A DNA stretch of 64,000 nucleotides from Macrostomum lignano (GCA_002269645.1 NIVC01001781.1:62001-126000), one strand, 5' to 3'. Counted from the stretch's first letter, positions 3,685 through 15,600 are shown. Program-made: numbers and translations. Notes: generated by a model not told the origin, from the sequence alone.

Positions 3685-6600
3685 ATGTCAGTTTCCAATT
3701 CCGGTAAACAAGGTGACGCCAAAGGCAGAGGCAAATTTTCTTCATTTAATATAAACGTTGTGTACCAGGGCAAGGACACTAATCCGAAAAAGGACTCAGG
3801 TATGTTTCAGTGAAGCTAGAACATTGAAATCTTTATAGAAATTATACATTTGACCCAATGATTTATATTATTATTCCATTTTGCCAATCCATCCGTGCAG
3901 GCGGGCACCGCTCCTTCGGGCATGGCTTACAGACGCTAGGCAAACTGCCACCTAGCAGGCGGGCACCGCCGCCTTGCTTATTGCCCAGTTTAAAGAGTCA
4001 AACTGGCAACAATGATCCAAATGTTAATCTGGTGCCACCTGGCGGAGCCGGCTGGGGCAGCGGCGGAGGCGGTCAGAACGGCTCCGAGGTCGCCGGTCAG
4101 CGAGGCGATGACTCCAGCGTTGGTGGCAGCGGCTCCGGTGCGGCGTCCTCCTCATTGTCGACTGGTCCGCCTGCGCGCGACCGCAATCAGCCGTGGGGTG
4201 GCGGCGCCGGCGTTGGTCAAGGGTCTGTTGACCCGATGGCCCCGTCCTACATGGGCGGCAAAGATTTAGTATCTGGGCACCATTATGCTCATCAGACCCA
4301 GCAACAGCAGCAGCACCAGCCGCATCAACAATCTTCATCTCAGCGTCCGCAGCCTCAGAAATCTTGGCGCGGACCGGCTGGCGCTGGCGCTTTGAAAAAT
4401 CCCGATTTATCGCAGGCCCCAGCCGGTACCCTGCTGTTTGCTTCCGCTGCCGCTGCCGGCCCTGCTGCTGCTTCTTCTACCTCTACTGGAAGCAGCGCTG
4501 CGCCTACAGCAACTCCGGCTGCTCCTACTGGCGGAGGCGGCAACGCTCGTCACGCAGAAACCCGGCCGCAGCATGCTGTATCCAAGCGCCAACAATCCGT
4601 GTTAAAAACTGAATTAGACGAGATCACTAAAGACGACATGGTTGCCACTGGTTGGGCTTTGGCGCACAACGACGAATTGGATTATTCGGCTAAGATTGTG
4701 TTTAGCGACGATGAGGACGACGAACGAGGAGGCGGCGCTGATCGACGCGAAGAGTTAGTTTTATTTTTGTTTATGCTTGTGTTAAAAATGAGAAACAGTT
4801 GGAGTTAAATGGCTTAGATAGTCTAGGGGAAATTAGGTAAGATTAATGCATCCTCTAATAGGGGATATTACTCCCTAATATACAGAAAAGGGAATTAAGA
4901 TGGACTAGTGTCCCAGTGTCCCCCATGATGGTCTAGGGGGAATTTAGATGGGCTAGTGTAGCCCCTGTTGGTCTAAGGGGGAATTTAGATGGACTAGTGT
5001 AGCCCCTGATGGTCTAAAGGGGAATTTAGATGGACTAATGTAGTCCCTGTTGGTCTGGGGGAATTTAGATGGACTAGTGTAGCCCCTGATGGTCTAGGGG
5101 AAATTTATATGGACTAGTGTAGCCCCTGATGGTCTAGGGGGAATTTAGATGGACTAGTGTAGCCCCTGATGGTCTAGGGGAAATTTATATGGACTAGTGT
5201 AGCCCCCGATGGTCTAAGAGGAATTTAGATGGACTAGTGTAGCCCCTGATGGTCTAGGGGGAATTTATATGGACTAGTGTAGCCCCTGATGGTCTAGGGG
5301 GAATTTAGATGGACTAGTGTAGCCCCCGATGGTCTAAGGGGAATTTAGATGGACTAGTGTAGCCCCTGATGGTCTAGGGGGAATTTAGATGGACTAGTGT
5401 AGCCCCCGATGGTCTAAGGGGAATTTAGATGGACTAGTGTAGCCCCTGATGGTCTAGGGGGGATTTAGATGGAGTAAGAAAAACCTCAACGAAGAAACTT
5501 CTTAAACATAATTTATCAATGTCAATCACTGAGCCAGATGATGCTCTTCCATGGCTCTGAGATTGGGGAATTCCCAACACTGCGGAGAGTTAATCACACC
5601 GATTTTAATTCTACTGATGGCTTTGCTGTGTGTGAGACATTGTATTTAAATGTTTTAGAAGTCTAGGCTGCTTACTACTGTACCATATGATGCTGTTCCA
5701 TGGCTCTGAGTTTAACTGATGAAGCCAATTACACCGAAATTATATTTCTGATTTATGCAATGCTACTTTAGTAAAATATAAGTAGCCTTATAAATTCATC
5801 AAATTTGTAACTAAAAATCAACTAAAAAATCCCCCCATCAGTCGACGCAAAGACCGAGGCGACAGGTCTCATCGAGAGCATCACGCTGCAATTGAGCCGA
5901 CTGGTCAGGCACAGCATCAGCAGCATCATCACCAATCTGGGGGCGGCAATTTCCCCATGCCTTTGCCTGACGTGTCTCAACCGCCGCCGCCGTTTCATCT
6001 TCAACAGCAGAAGCAGCAACAGCAGCAGCAACAACAACAGCATCATCACCAGCCGCCTTATCATCATCACAGACAGCCGCAGCACTCTCTGGTAGGCGGC
6101 CCGCCCAGTTTGTTATCCTCGGACCTGACCGGGATCGCCGTGTCCTCAACTGGCCCAGCTCCTATTGTGGCGCCAATAGACGATGAGCAGCACATGTCGC
6201 AAACGTTGGAAGCCAAAGCTCAGGCTAAAACGTTGGCTGTACAACGGGCTAGACAGAGGAGACAGATGGCTTCTACTAGTGAGACGGATCCTGAGCAGGG
6301 TTCGATGGTGCAGCACCAGCAGCAACAGCAACCTCAACGTCGCGTTGTACCGCCGCCGCCTCAGCAGCAACAGCAGCAGCAACAACAGCAGCAGCAACCA
6401 CCACAGCCGACTCCGGCTGCATCCAGCGCGGCTGCCCCTAAACATTTGATAGATTTAGAAGAAGCCCTTAAAAGACGGCGTCAAGCTAGTACTAACCAGC
6501 AGGCGCCGCAGCAGCAGCAGCAACAGTTGGCTGCAGCTGAGCAGCAGCAACAACATCCCAAACGCGATCACCAACCTGCTGTTCCGTCACTAATCGCTAC

Positions 6601-12600: not shown

Positions 12601-15600
12601 CGGGCAGCATGACCAGCCATCTGTAGCTTCTCAGTCTCAGTTCTCGGCGATAGCCCGATCCTTGTGGGCGGCGAATGACGGTGTGCCTTCGTCAAATTCG
12701 GCAGCTGGGGAGTCTTCGCTGTCGTCTAGTTCGGCTGCGGCTGTGGCCGCCGTTATTGCGGCGACATCGGCTGTCGCAACGGCGAGCATGTCGATGGTCG
12801 GTGGTCATAGCGGGATGCTGAGTCAGCAGCAGTCTCAGCTGGCTCATCATCATCATGCACAGATGCTGCAACAGCACGGAGGCGTTAAAGACGAATATCA
12901 GCTGACTGGGGCGCATCCGCTGCTGTCTGTTGACAAGGTAAGTTTCTTTATGCTGTTAATCCCAATCTAGATGCTGTCAATCTCTATCTAGATGCTGCCA
13001 ATCCCCATCTAGATGCTGCCAATCCCCATCTAGATGCTGTCAATCTCTATCTAGATACTGTCAATCCCCATCTAGTCTAGATGCTGCCAATCCCCATCTC
13101 GATGCTGCCAATCCCCATCTCGATGCTGCCAATCCCCATCTCGATGCTGCCAATCCCCATCTAGATGCTGTCAATCCCCATCTAGTCTAGATGCTGCCAA
13201 TCCATATCTAGATGCTGTAAATCCTCATCTAGATACTGTCAATCCTTATTTAGATGCTGTCAATCCCTATTTTAATACTTTCAATCTCCATCTAGATGTT
13301 GTCAGTACCCATTTAGATGCTGTCAACCCCCATCTAGATGCTGTCAACCCCCATCTAGATGCTGTCAACCCCCATCTAGATGCTGTCAACCCCCATCTAG
13401 ATGCTGTCAATCGCCATCTAGATGTTGTTAATCCCCATCTAGATGCTGTCAACCCCCATCTAGATGCTGTCAACCCCCATCTAGATGCTGTCAATCGCCA
13501 TCTAGATGTTGTTAATCCCCATCTAGATGCTTTCAATTCCCATATAGATATTTTAAACCTCTATTTAGAATTATAAAAGATCCTGACAATGTACATTGAC
13601 CTGCAAATATGATTACTATAAAGATCTAAGTCTCTGACTACTGCTTAATAATGCGGTTATTTGAAGAAAGACTTATTCACAATGATTTGCTAGGTCAATG
13701 TGTCTTTCACTAATTATACTGTACTTTTGTGTCTTTAATGAGGTCCCTTTTGCTTTTAACTTTGCCCTTGGACTTAAAAGCCTTTCATTAATACGGCAAA
13801 CATGATTACTATAAAGATCTAAGTCTCTGACAACCGCTGCTATGTATAAAAGCAGTGGATTCTATTTGAAGAAAAACTTAACTAAATGATTTGCATTGTA
13901 TTTTTGAATAACTTGGTGAATAGTCGTTCATCACATGCTATGTAGGGCTTGTGCTTGTTCTGCAAACATGATTACTATAAAGATCTAAGTCTCTGAATGT
14001 TTTTATGAAGACTTAATAAAAATATGATTTGCAATCTAGCGCTTAAATTCTCTCATTAATATTGTACTCAACCATTGTATAGTATGTATATAAGTGACTC
14101 CTTATTGGTTAACTATATTTTTGCAGTCGTTTGCTCTGGGCGGTCAACAGAGCTTCATGATGGCTCCCGGCGGACCAATGTCGCTTCTCGGTCCCGTTCC
14201 GCCTCAGCAGCAACAGCAGCAGCAGCAACAACAACAACAACAGCAACAGCAGAGCTCGGCTCTCCACGAAAGCAGCATGTTCCCCTTGTATCAGATGCAG
14301 CCAGACTTTTCTCTGAGCTTTATGCAGCCTCCGCCAGATACTGCATCGAATCTGTTTAAAGCACCGATGGCGTCAGTGACTGGCAACAAGGGTATGTCGC
14401 ACGCGCCGGGTAGTGCAGCAGGAACCACTCAGCAGCAGCAGCAGCAGCAGCAGCAGCAGTCGCAGCTTGTTGCGGCAGCGATACAGCGCGGACAATTGAT
14501 GCCAACACAGCTTATTGATCCTACTAGCATGTTTGGACCGTCTGGCGGGGTGCTGGCCCAGCAGCGACAACCGCCGTTCTATCCAGTGAGTTTTTTGTTC
14601 TGCTGCTTGCCCGATGGTAGGTGAAGGCTGTCTGATCCGTGTCCTGAAGGTAGTCTGATGCTAGGGTCCTGAAGCTTGTCTGATGCCAGTGTCCTGAAGG
14701 TAGTCTGATGCTAGTGTCCTGAAGCCTGTCTGATGCTAGTGTCCTGAAGGTTGTCTGATCCCAGTGTCCTGAAGCTTGTCTGATGCTAGGGTCCTGAAGC
14801 TTGTCTGATGCTAGTGTCCTGAAGCTTGTCTGATGCTAGGGTCCTGAAGCTTGTCTGATCCCAGTGTCCTGAAGGTTGTCTGATCCCAGTGTCCTGAAGC
14901 TTGTCTGATGCTAGTGTCCTGAAGCTTGTCTGATGCTAGTGTCCTGAAGGCTGTCTGATGCTAGTGTCCTGAAGGCTGTTTGATGCTAGTGTCCTGAAGG
15001 CTGTCTGATGCTAGTGTCCTGAAGGCTGTTTGATGCTAGTGTCCTGAAGGCTGTCTGATGCTAGGGTCCTGAAGCTTGTCTGATGCCAGTGTCCTGAAGG
15101 TAGTCTGATGCTAGTGTCCTAAAGCCTGTCTGATGCTAGTGTCCTGAAGGTTGTCTGATCCCAGTGTCCTGAAGCTTGTCTGATGCTAGGGTCCTGAAGC
15201 TTGTCTGATGCTAGTGTCCTGAAGCTTGTCTGATGCTAGTGTCCTGAAGGCTGTCTGATGCTAGTGTCCTGAAGGCTGTCTGATGCTAGTGTCCTGAAGG
15301 CTGTCTGATGCTAGTGTCCTGAAGGCTGTCTGATGCTAGTGTCCTGAAGGCTGTCTGATGCTAGTGTCCTGAAGGCTGTCTGATGCTAGTGTCCTGAAGG
15401 CTGTCTGATGCCAGTGTCCTGAAGGCTGTCTGATGCCAGTGTCCTGAAGGCTGTCTGATGCCAGTGTCCTGAAGGCTGTCTGATGCCAGTGTCCTGAAGG
15501 CTGTCTGATGCTAGTGTCCTGAAGGCTGTCTGATGCTAGTGTCCTGAAGGCTGTCTGATGCCAGTGTCCTGAAGGCTGTCTGATGCCAGTGTCCTGAAGG

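Follow-up and report, generated by a model that had tools for sequence, protein, structure and literature searches.

The PRRC2/BAT2 host gene and its introns

The window analysed here is a 64,000-nucleotide stretch of the Macrostomum lignano genome, and the features of interest lie on its plus strand within a single protein-coding gene:

3685-19038, + strand: PRRC2/BAT2 homologue (host gene; BAT2_N domain, GT-AG junctions, UniRef match)
3685-3799, 3901-4753, 5842-6983, 7064-8397 and 8831-9029, + strand: host exons of the gene model
10879-11216, 12362-12937, 14127-14585 and 15899-16177, + strand: host exons, with further exons leading to the stop codon at 19038
4754-5841, + strand: intron 2, with a 40-nt tandem array (4915-5473) followed by units U1 and U2
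9030-10878, + strand: intron 5, with U3, a tandem array of 63 copies of a 21-nt repeat (9290-10673) and U4
12938-14126, + strand: intron 7, with a 21-nt tandem array (12950-13549) followed by U5, U6 and U7

Host exon 2 encodes the Pfam domain BAT2_N (PF07001; E=1e-16, 62.4 bits against a cut-off of 25), and the predicted protein is 97% identical to UniRef A0A1I8GTR8, an M. lignano "BAT2_N domain-containing protein". The gene model has canonical, phase-consistent GT-AG junctions and a 1765-codon frame that stays open through exon 9; the complete frame exceeds 1765 codons and predicts a long, low-complexity protein rich in Q, A, S and G after the N-terminal BAT2_N domain. Domain and identity together support assignment of the host to the PRRC2/BAT2 family, the name it bore in the original prediction. 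Since the gene model places all seven units in introns 2, 5 and 7 and outside the tandem arrays, the intron numbers and the "non-repetitive margins" given there were also right. The tandem array of intron 4 is the inverted complement of that of intron 7.

Seven box C/D units in three introns

The three introns hold two, two and three box C/D units, respectively, which form one family per intron (family 1, U1 and U2; family 2, U3 and U4; family 3, U5-U7):

5532-5622, + strand: U1, box C AUGAUGC at 5538, D' CUGA at 5557, D CUGA at 5614, D' guide CUCUUCCAUGGCU
5682-5756, + strand: U2, box C AUGAUGC at 5687, D' at 5706, C' UGAUGA at 5717, D at 5748
9085-9203 (core about 9098-9191), + strand: U3, box C AUGAUGA at 9103, D' at 9131, C' AUGAUGA at 9159, D at 9183, D' guide AUCUGUCAAUCCU
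10697-10799 (core about 10712-10787), + strand: U4, box C AUGAUGA at 10717, D' at 10744, C' UGCUGA at about 10758, D at 10779
13592-13702 (core 13603-13690), + strand: U5, box C AUGAUUA at 13609, D' at 13634, C' UGAAGA, D AUGA at 13682
13796-13894, + strand: U6, box C AUGAUUA at 13802, D' at 13827, C' UGAAGA, D AUGA at 13886
13962-14032, + strand: U7, box C AUGAUUA at 13968, D' at 13993, C' UGAAGA, D AUGA at 14024

Boxes C, D' and D occur in the correct order in 7/7 units, D' is CUGA throughout, and the combination of boxes C and D with internal D'/C' elements that characterizes box C/D snoRNAs was found. The C/D'/C'/D order claimed for all seven thus stands for the order itself, with reservations about individual boxes: U2 and U3 have a perfect C', U4-U7 one with a single mismatch (degenerate in U4) and U1 no clear one, and while the C/D pair is perfect in U3 and U4 (AUGAUGA/CUGA) and reads AUGAUGC/CUGA in U1 and U2, that of U5-U7 (AUGAUUA/AUGA) is non-canonical; the consensus is RUGAUGA for box C, close to the 5' end, and CUGA for box D, close to the 3' end. 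The D'-C' interval is a short loop or hairpin in every unit, including a 7-bp hairpin in U3, an 8-bp hairpin in U6, a hairpin in U5 and a short loop in U7; U1 has an internal hairpin within a 53-nt interior.

Paired terminal stems, likewise predicted for all units, are present in six of the seven. Flank duplexes are significant in five (U3-U7, z = -3.5 to -6.9), comprising external stems of 13 bp in U3 (z = -4.1), about 12 bp in U4 (z = -3.5) and 16 bp in U5 (z = -6.9), a perfect terminal stem GCAAA/UUUGC in U6 (z = -4.2) and the stem of U7 (z = -3.5). The 5-bp stem AGCCA/UGGCU of U1 is marginal (z = -1.6), and U2 has none. Paralogues form these external or terminal stems from unrelated sequences.

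Boxes alone are unconvincing, because a generic box-plus-stem scan returns about 0.9 candidates per shuffled window. In Rfam profile scans no unit attained a gathering score. The case rests instead on the pattern of paralogue conservation and on rRNA complementarity. From box C to D' the paralogues are 96% (U1/U2), 88% (U3/U4) and 100% (U5/U6/U7) identical, whereas identity in the 50 nt to either side of the units is 44-58%, with shuffled sequence giving 45-53%, and in the D'-to-D regions it is 37-62%. The original prediction of retained guides amid diverged spacers is thereby borne out. The conserved blocks are confined to these loci within the window, where shuffling leads one to expect 0-0.3 matches. 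Such blocks amid flanks at the shuffled level are, at the level of sequence, a signature of purifying selection, although in family 3 part of the identity between blocks could come from gene conversion and not from selection acting copy by copy. The position of the last copy in each intron is also regular: from the end of box D to the 3' splice site there are 90 nt for U2, 96 nt for U4 and 99 nt for U7; U3 lies 55-70 nt past the 5' splice site. Anatomy, paralogue conservation and position are as expected for intron-encoded box C/D snoRNAs and support this assignment. U1-U7 are therefore probably box C/D snoRNA genes, seven in number and grouped into three families of paralogues, predicted to be transcribed within the PRRC2/BAT2 pre-mRNA.

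Predicted targets of the three families

Box C/D guides pair with rRNA or snRNA through an antisense element of at least 10 nt that ends at D or D', and the target is the nucleotide opposite the fifth position from that box. The D' guide of family 2 is perfectly complementary to 18S AGGAUUGACAGAU over 13 nt in U3 and 14 nt in U4, and at least 19 fragments of real eukaryotic rDNA contain the 18S sequence so matched, AGGATTGACAGATTGA. The stretch identical between U3 and U4, AUCUGUCAAUCCUCUGA, is the 18S-pairing stretch plus D', whereas the two units differ in the 6-7 nt that separate the guide from box C. Rfam aligns both units end to end with SNORD110 (RF00610, clan CL00076) in the same guide register, at 31 bits for U4 (E=0.0034 in the region scan, 0.025 window-wide) and 28.6 bits for U3; the Rfam check thus gave an alignment to a known family for these two, with all scores below gathering thresholds (64 for SNORD110). 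Family 2 resembles human SNORD110 and yeast snR55 in its D' antisense element, equal to the SNORD110 consensus over AUCUGUCAAUCC, in register and in size (about 75-95 nt), with no similarity to SNORD110 beyond guide and boxes. Sharing the antisense element, D' position and register of SNORD110, it is therefore predicted to have the same target nucleotide, the first U of 18S GGAU*UGACAG (asterisk after the target), equivalent to human Um1288 and yeast Um1269, and a guide for that equivalent position is indeed what was found. The two-nucleotide spacing of yeast U1269 and G1271 presumably matches that of planarian Um1266 and Gm1268, and the planarian pair probably marks the same site as Um1288/Um1269. 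In the literature, SNORD110 targets 18S U1288 and is lodged in NOP56 in human, yeast snR55 targets 18S Um1269, and Um1266/Gm1268 are described as conserved in planarian 18S. By its guide, family 2 is the flatworm counterpart of SNORD110/snR55, a widely conserved guide, and the proposal that this lineage has recruited different guides fails for it. What differs is the host and not the guide, since human SNORD110 sits in NOP56 and family 2 in PRRC2, with two copies in one intron.

The family 1 guide of U1 forms 10 Watson-Crick and one GU pair with 28S GGCCAUGGAAG, and the 28S sequence so paired, GGCCATGGAAG, is conserved in 31 of the rDNA fragments; shuffled family 1 guides gave an anchored 10-bp match in just 1.2-1.9% of trials. 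The U2 guide forms nine Watson-Crick and one GU pair with the 28S target (P about 0.04-0.06), and for family 1 as a whole the antisense element pairs with 28S of other eukaryotes over 10-11 bp (P about 0.01-0.02). This complementarity moderately supports a role for family 1, whose probable methylation target is the A of the conserved 28S motif GGCCA*UGGAAG. We know of no methylation at this position. No site of the planarian methylation map could be placed there, placement being estimated from numbering offsets. Assignment of family 1 to snR61/SNORD38 (RF00476) was considered and rejected: the 17.9 bits (E = 1.7) of U2 fall short of the gathering score, 45, and the family 1 guide pairs downstream of the snR61/SNORD38 site, 28S A1858/25S A1133 (AGCAGAACUGG), at a distance from A1858 that we take to be about 108 nt in human 28S.

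The search with the family 3 guide covered 18S, 5.8S and 28S of seven complete rDNA units together with 120 fragments of rDNA, from other eukaryotes, and gave no match of 10 bp or more. Family 3 is probably a lineage-specific or orphan guide, whose antisense element would target AGACU*UAGAUCUU. Its non-canonical AUGAUUA and AUGA are common to 3/3 copies. A kink-turn has tandem G.A pairs, a U.U and then a Watson-Crick pair; in family 3 a compensated U-A pair (stem II) would replace the consensus pair between box C G6 and box D C1, with the G.A pairs kept. The best Rfam match, SNORD52/snR78 (RF00276; 28S U3904/U2421), is weak (U7, 25.5 bits against a gathering score of 45) and was rejected. It has in common with U7 the overall layout and ...AGUCUCUGA at the D' box, but its boxes are AUGAUGA/CUGA, family 3 pairing at 28S GACUCUAGUC needs two bulges, and the SNORD52/snR78 site, 28S GACUCUAGUCUG, conserved as GACTCTAGTC in rDNA fragments, offers no gapless pairing with the family 3 guide.

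Biogenesis, precedents and alternative readings

Kink-turn formation, protein recruitment and exonuclease trimming are established steps of snoRNP biology. Mature box C/D snoRNAs are discrete RNAs of 60-100 nt that carry fibrillarin, Nop56, Nop58 and Snu13. In each PRRC2 unit boxes C and D would pair into a kink-turn, with the terminal stem closing it; this kink-turn would bind Snu13/15.5K and next Nop56, Nop58 and fibrillarin, and the resulting snoRNP would shield the RNA during exonuclease trimming of the spliced and debranched intron. The 3'-most copy of each intron may be spaced from the 3' splice site so as to favour assembly coupled to splicing, and U3-U7, upstream and 3'-most copies alike, have long external stems of a kind that may permit splicing-independent processing. 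Individual release from introns with two or three units would need cleavage between units or tolerance of snoRNA-ended intermediates.

Drosophila reportedly has intronic snoRNA clusters (Huang et al., 2005). Placing several snoRNAs in one intron was called unusual for animals; it is indeed uncommon there, and it is not new. Introns with several snoRNAs are known from plants and Plasmodium, two such introns from chicken, and a 2024 review treats "intronic snoRNA clusters" as a category, along with sno-lncRNAs made from two snoRNAs in one intron. The clusters of rice, Arabidopsis, Plasmodium (PFS15/16), the two chicken introns and the isoform clusters of Drosophila have 2-3 snoRNAs per spliceosomal intron, often paralogous, as in PRRC2, and sno-lncRNA-forming introns (SLERT, LNC-SNO49AB) have two, like PRRC2 intron 5. 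PRRC2 differs in that three introns of one protein-coding gene each have a private family, and in that the copies of intron 5 flank a 1.4-kb minisatellite.

SNORD62A/B are recorded in PRRC2B, reportedly by snoRNABase. The vertebrate precedent that had been drawn on is confirmed in part: one paper co-maps BAT2, SNORA38 and PRRC2A, and our literature search found no link between SNORD62 and PRRC2B. The host family is the same, but the vertebrate snoRNAs (H/ACA SNORA38 and C/D SNORD62) differ from the three M. lignano families, so there is no sign of inherited snoRNA content.

On one rival reading no snoRNAs are made, and the apparent boxes either arose by chance in AT-rich intron margins or belong to a dispersed repeat; this would agree with the yield of the generic scan and with the Rfam scores below threshold. 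Chance does not, however, account for blocks of 23-32 nt at 88-100% identity between copies with unrelated flanks, for a perfect, correctly registered antisense match of 13-14 nt to an 18S site known to be methylated, or for the consistent 90-99 nt spacing from three acceptors; the window has no extra copies of the blocks, and inspection of the sequence found no poly(A) tails or target-site duplications as left by retroposed copies. We consider this reading highly improbable. Somewhat more room is left for a single functional gene per intron, most likely the copy 90-99 nt from the 3' splice site, with the others as decaying, unprocessed duplicates. Only the proximal copies hold the favoured distance, and U1 has an odd interior and no clear C' box. 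Decaying duplicates should nevertheless lose both block identity and stems, which disfavours this view: the C-guide-D' block is kept at 88-100% in all copies, distal ones included, despite shuffled-level flanks, the strongest external stems belong to the distal copies U3, U5 and U6 (z = -4.1 to -6.9), and the weakest is that of U2, a proximal copy. One working copy per intron therefore seems unlikely.

Instead of working as free methylation guides, the units might mainly cap and protect longer intron-derived RNAs (sno-lncRNAs) or influence host splicing in cis. The best example would come from intron 5, as a U3-to-U4 transcript (9098-10787) of about 1.7 kb holding the 63-copy minisatellite, since these units bracket the array there in the geometry reported for sno-lncRNAs; moreover, the intron 4 array has 11 sense copies of GGATTGACAG, which could pair with the family 2 guide. 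Yet the canonical 18S guide alone accounts for family 2 conservation, a 10-11 bp match somewhere in a 15-kb pre-mRNA is expected, by our estimate, a few percent of the time, and the gaps between units in introns 2 and 7 span just 60-110 nt and hold nothing of note. This role is rather improbable.

Seven PRRC2-intron snoRNA genes, the reading we prefer, are a new annotation, sound but ordinary. In the literature, PRRC2 is described as a translation-associated RNA-binding protein. It is a long shot that the multi-copy layout is itself functional, with a snoRNA-capped intron 5 RNA of about 1.7 kb and a family 2 snoRNP pairing at the 11 GGAUUGACAG sites of the intron 4 array in its own host pre-mRNA; if true, the two together would tie snoRNA production in a translation-factor gene to how its exons 5-7 are spliced or back-spliced.

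The PRRC2 host gene and its seven intronic units

The product of exons 1-2 shows 97% identity to UniRef A0A1I8GTR8, a 'BAT2_N domain-containing protein' from M. lignano, and exon 2 matches the Pfam BAT2_N domain (62.4 bits, E=1e-16), in agreement with the original prediction that the host is PRRC2/BAT2. The gene model is based on reading frames and phase-compatible GT-AG junctions; its exons 1-9 form an open frame of 1765 codons encoding a Q/A/S/G-rich product like PRRC2 proteins. An upstream ORF of 13 codons (ATG 3666; 3666-3707) runs, in another frame, across the predicted PRRC2 start codon at 3685. 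In the PRRC2 homology search the only distant match with DNA was a vertebrate-like PRRC2 transcript (L122), which contains none of the guide motifs. PRRC2 proteins associate with initiation factors and the 40S subunit, so this host is in line with the tendency of snoRNAs to reside in translation-related genes.

PRRC2 gene model and predicted box C/D units (window coordinates; unit boxes read from the sequence)
3685-3799, 3901-4753, 5842-6983, 7064-8397, 8831-9029, + strand: exons 1-5
10879-11216, 12362-12937, 14127-14585, 15899-16177, + strand: exons 6-9
after 16177, stop codon at 19038, + strand: later exons
4754-5841, 9030-10878, 12938-14126, + strand: introns 2, 5 and 7
U1 (family 1, intron 2), + strand: box C AUGAUGC 5538, D' 5557, box D CUGA 5614
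U2 (family 1, intron 2), + strand: box C AUGAUGC 5687, D' 5706, box D CUGA 5748
U3 (family 2, intron 5), + strand: box C AUGAUGA 9103, D' 9131, box D CUGA 9183
U4 (family 2, intron 5), + strand: box C AUGAUGA 10717, D' 10744, box D CUGA 10779
U5 (family 3, intron 7), + strand: box C AUGAUUA 13609, D' 13634, box D AUGA 13682
U6 (family 3, intron 7), + strand: box C AUGAUUA 13802, D' 13827, box D AUGA 13886
U7 (family 3, intron 7), + strand: box C AUGAUUA 13968, D' 13993, box D AUGA 14024

All seven units are present where they had been predicted, in the unique margins of introns 2, 5 and 7 beside tandem arrays. Further copies of the conserved blocks are absent from the 64 kb window (0-0.3 expected from shuffles), introns 9-11 yielded no additional snoRNA candidates, and scanning the entire window with Rfam at permissive E-values gave no other credible snoRNA match. 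In the comparison with Rfam, proposed together with the original prediction, no match in the whole window reached a gathering threshold; E-value scans returned sub-threshold matches, to SNORD110, SNORD52 and snR61 only.

Box motifs by themselves are weak evidence for snoRNAs. A search for the generic pattern of C, D' and D boxes with a stem picks up about 0.9 candidates in each shuffled window; it was too strict for some of the real units and was rejected as a discriminator. The case is carried by the conservation pattern, the stems, the position and the target complementarity. In pairwise alignments the block from box C to D' is 96% (U1/U2), 88% (U3/U4) and 100% (U5/U6/U7) identical, whereas the 50-nt flanks of paralogues share 44-58% identity against 45-53% in shuffled controls; guides have been kept while spacers diverged, as predicted, and the duplications must be old. 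The family 2 copies agree precisely over the 18S-pairing segment together with D' (AUCUGUCAAUCCUCUGA), but not over the 6-7 nt that separate box C from the guide. The paired terminal stems that had been claimed for the units are found in U1, as 5 bp directly adjoining the boxes, and in U3-U7, whose 20-nt flank duplexes are far stabler than shuffled flanks (z = -3.5 to -6.9), but the same comparison with shuffles reveals none in U2. The stems of paralogues are unrelated in sequence, their pairing alone being kept: those of U3 consist of GGCGUUUCAUUUAA/UGUGAAUGGAAUGCC and those of U4 of GCUUAA..GUCCGUUG/CAUUGACGGAUUAAGC. The D'-C' interval forms a short loop in U2, U4 and U7 and a hairpin in U1, U3, U5 and U6, either of which is typical of C/D snoRNAs. 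The guides adjoining box D vary between paralogues, and where they match rDNA best they violate the 5th-nucleotide rule; they were set aside as non-functional or private to a single copy.

Position is equally regular, the last copy in each intron having its box D end 90 nt (U2, 5751 to 5841), 96 nt (U4, 10782 to 10878) or 99 nt (U7, 14027 to 14126) before the acceptor. In mammals a spacing of about 70-80 nt, close to these values, reportedly favours splicing-coupled C/D snoRNP assembly (work of Hirose and Steitz from 2001). Taken together, we regard U1-U7 with good confidence as genuine C/D snoRNA genes.

Candidate targets of the three guide families

Guides were compared with real eukaryotic rDNA drawn from metagenomes; asterisks follow the nucleotide predicted to be methylated. 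The family 2 guide AUCUGUCAAUCC lies in the same register to D' as in the Rfam alignment of SNORD110, and both copies align end to end with that model, U4 at 31.0 bits (E=0.0034 for the region, 0.025 window-wide) and U3 at 28.6 bits; neither reaches the gathering score of 64 required for formal covariance-model membership. At least 19 rDNA fragments contain 18S AGGATTGACAGATTGA, to which the guides of U3 (13 nt) and U4 (14 nt) are perfectly complementary; by the 5th-nucleotide rule, the first U of 18S GGAU*UG would be the methylated nucleotide. SNORD110 targets human 18S U1288, snR55 targets yeast Um1269, and planarian RiboMeth-seq detected conserved 18S Um1266 and Gm1268, whose sequence context is not given in the paper. 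Family 2 shares its guide with human SNORD110 and differs in its host, which is PRRC2 here and NOP56 in human. The yeast U1269/G1271 pair has the same two-nucleotide spacing as the planarian pair, from which we infer that the family 2 site is methylated in flatworms and that the planarian site is probably the family 2 target. The claim that this lineage recruited different guides fails for family 2, whose Rfam register and 18S complementarity identify a conserved SNORD110/snR55 guide. U3 and U4 are very probably genuine snoRNA genes, and family 2 is a firm flatworm counterpart of SNORD110/snR55.

For family 1, the guide common to U1 and U2, UUCCAUGGCU, pairs with conserved 28S GGCCAUGGAAG through one GU and 10 Watson-Crick pairs in U1 and one GU and nine in U2, with the A of 28S GGCCA*UGG as the predicted methyl position. 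Among shuffled guides, 1.2-1.9% of trials produce an anchored match of 10 bp and 4-7% one of 9 bp, and this 28S assignment is plausible but not secure. On the human 28S sequence the site would fall about 108 nt 3' of A1858; we know of no methylation at it, and by our estimate of the numbering offset the planarian map, which is clearly incomplete, has no site there. The Rfam match to snR61 is non-significant (17.9 bits, E=1.7), and the window contains no complementary sites for this antisense elsewhere. U1 and U2 are probably genuine snoRNA genes.

Family 3 is distinguished by its boxes. All three copies read AUGAUUA at box C and AUGA at box D, and their GCAAA/UUUGC stem is perfect. In the standard C/D kink-turn, reported by Watkins et al. 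in 2000 and 2002, the U.U pair and the two sheared G.A pairs are followed by a pair between G6 of box C and C1 of box D. Here G6 is replaced by U and C1 by A, a double change that keeps a Watson-Crick pair (U-A for G-C) and speaks for a genuine kink-turn. U5, U6 and U7 have the same 18-nt D' element, CUAUAAAGAUCUAAGUCU, which predicts the target AGACU*UAGAUCUUUAUAG (also written AGACU*UAGAUCUU). In seven complete rDNA units no anchored match reached 9 bp, no consistent low-energy duplex was found in rDNA, and the window offers no complementary sites elsewhere. An identity with SNORD52 was suggested by a weak Rfam match (25.5 bits against 45) and rejected, as the conserved 28S site GACUCUAGUC pairs with the guide only with bulges. 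The predicted target partly resembles the variable 3' strand of 18S V7 (...GACGTAGATCTTCTTAGAGGGAC in some taxa), just upstream of CUUAGAGGGAC, which as a target would be a guess. To our knowledge nothing convincing pairs with this guide in the RNAs named U1, U2, U4, U5 and U6 (not the present units), in 5.8S or at the 28S ends. Family 3 is best described as an orphan or lineage-specific guide; there is a good chance that U5-U7 are genuine snoRNA genes, which would represent a natural variant of the C/D kink-turn with a U-A pair in place of G-C.

Processing of the units and repeats around them

By established snoRNP biology, the units would be co-transcribed with PRRC2, their kink-turns bound by Snu13/15.5K followed by assembly of Nop56, Nop58 and fibrillarin, the debranched intron trimmed by exonucleases, and the nucleotide opposite position 5 of the guide methylated. 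Exonucleases alone would leave intact the stretch between two snoRNPs in one intron, so that either a cut is made between the units or snoRNA-ended RNAs (sno-lncRNAs) accumulate. In intron 5, U3 lies 55-70 nt from the donor and U4 96 nt from the acceptor, and the two are separated by a 1.4 kb array in which a 21-nt repeat occurs 63 times; this is exactly the geometry from which a sno-lncRNA would be expected. The long external stems of the distal copies U3, U5 and U6, those farther from the 3' splice site, would suit splicing-independent processing, but U4 and U7 carry them as well and the correlation with position is not clean.

Minisatellite arrays (unit 21-41 nt, 13-63 copies, 84-96% identity) occupy nearly every long PRRC2 intron and the downstream region.

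Repeats and transposon
4915-5473, 8465-8744, 9290-10673, 11229-12263, 12950-13549: tandem arrays 1-5
14622-15834, 17013-18220, 20450-21499, 23747-24997: tandem arrays 6-9
22030-23091, - strand: intact mariner/Mos1-type transposase ORF, 353 aa (HTH_48, HTH_Tnp_Tc3_2, DDE_3 and Transposase_1 matches), about 3 kb downstream of the PRRC2 stop codon

The array units all differ except in introns 4 (8443-8772) and 7 (12945-13570), whose 21-nt arrays are mutual inverted complements. Each arm spans about 320-330 nt; complementarity between the arms is 82-85% and rises to 87-91% over stretches of 126-131 nt. They lie 4.2-4.6 kb apart, flanking exons 5-7, and could form a long duplex in the pre-mRNA, an arrangement like the inverted Alu pairs that promote back-splicing. 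The intron 4 array also contains 11 sense-strand copies (8484-8724; 0.17 expected) of GGATTGACAG, the 18S stretch with which the family 2 guide pairs, each a potential 11-bp pairing site (one GU, 10 Watson-Crick) for the host's own intron 5 snoRNA; they are probably one chance 10-mer amplified by the array. Elsewhere, AT-rich palindromic hairpins (52403-52518, 54418-54631, 106-293) give matches on either strand to several miRNA families that are unrelated to one another, all below gathering scores, and are most likely low-complexity or inverted-repeat artefacts, not miRNA genes. Upstream of PRRC2, where the GC content is otherwise 30%, a segment rich in G-runs and C-runs (2221-2400; ...GGGGGGGGCGGTCGCCCCCCCCC...) has near-palindromic ends (CCCCATAGCAGTGGCGCAACCAG ... 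CTGGTTGCGCTACTGCCCCATAG) and looks like a small inverted-repeat element.

Comparison with known snoRNA hosts

The original prediction rightly saw several snoRNAs per intron and called this unusual for animals; the arrangement is uncommon there but already known. Drosophila isoform clusters are one case of intronic snoRNA clusters. Precedents also include two chicken introns with duplicated snoRNAs, the intronic clusters of plants and Plasmodium, and sno-lncRNA loci with two snoRNAs in one intron. Of the vertebrate PRRC2 hosts invoked as parallels, co-mapping of SNORA38 with BAT2/PRRC2A is reported in one paper, but a link between PRRC2B and SNORD62 was not found in the searchable literature. 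There is no indication that a common PRRC2 ancestor passed on this snoRNA content. In human, the counterpart of family 2 resides in NOP56. The reading as C/D snoRNA genes within PRRC2 thus stands, but its novelty was overstated, given the conserved SNORD110/snR55 guide and the known intronic clusters.

A homology survey in Schistosoma reported no unambiguous snoRNA homologue besides the U3 snoRNA, and our literature search found no M. lignano snoRNA catalogue. Flatworm snoRNAs are almost unannotated, and the seven loci are a useful annotation. They leave the understanding of snoRNAs unchanged and provide a spiralian example of paralogues retained within single introns, a convenient locus for studying the processing of multi-snoRNA introns and, in families 1 and 3, two candidate lineage-specific guides directly testable by RiboMeth-seq.
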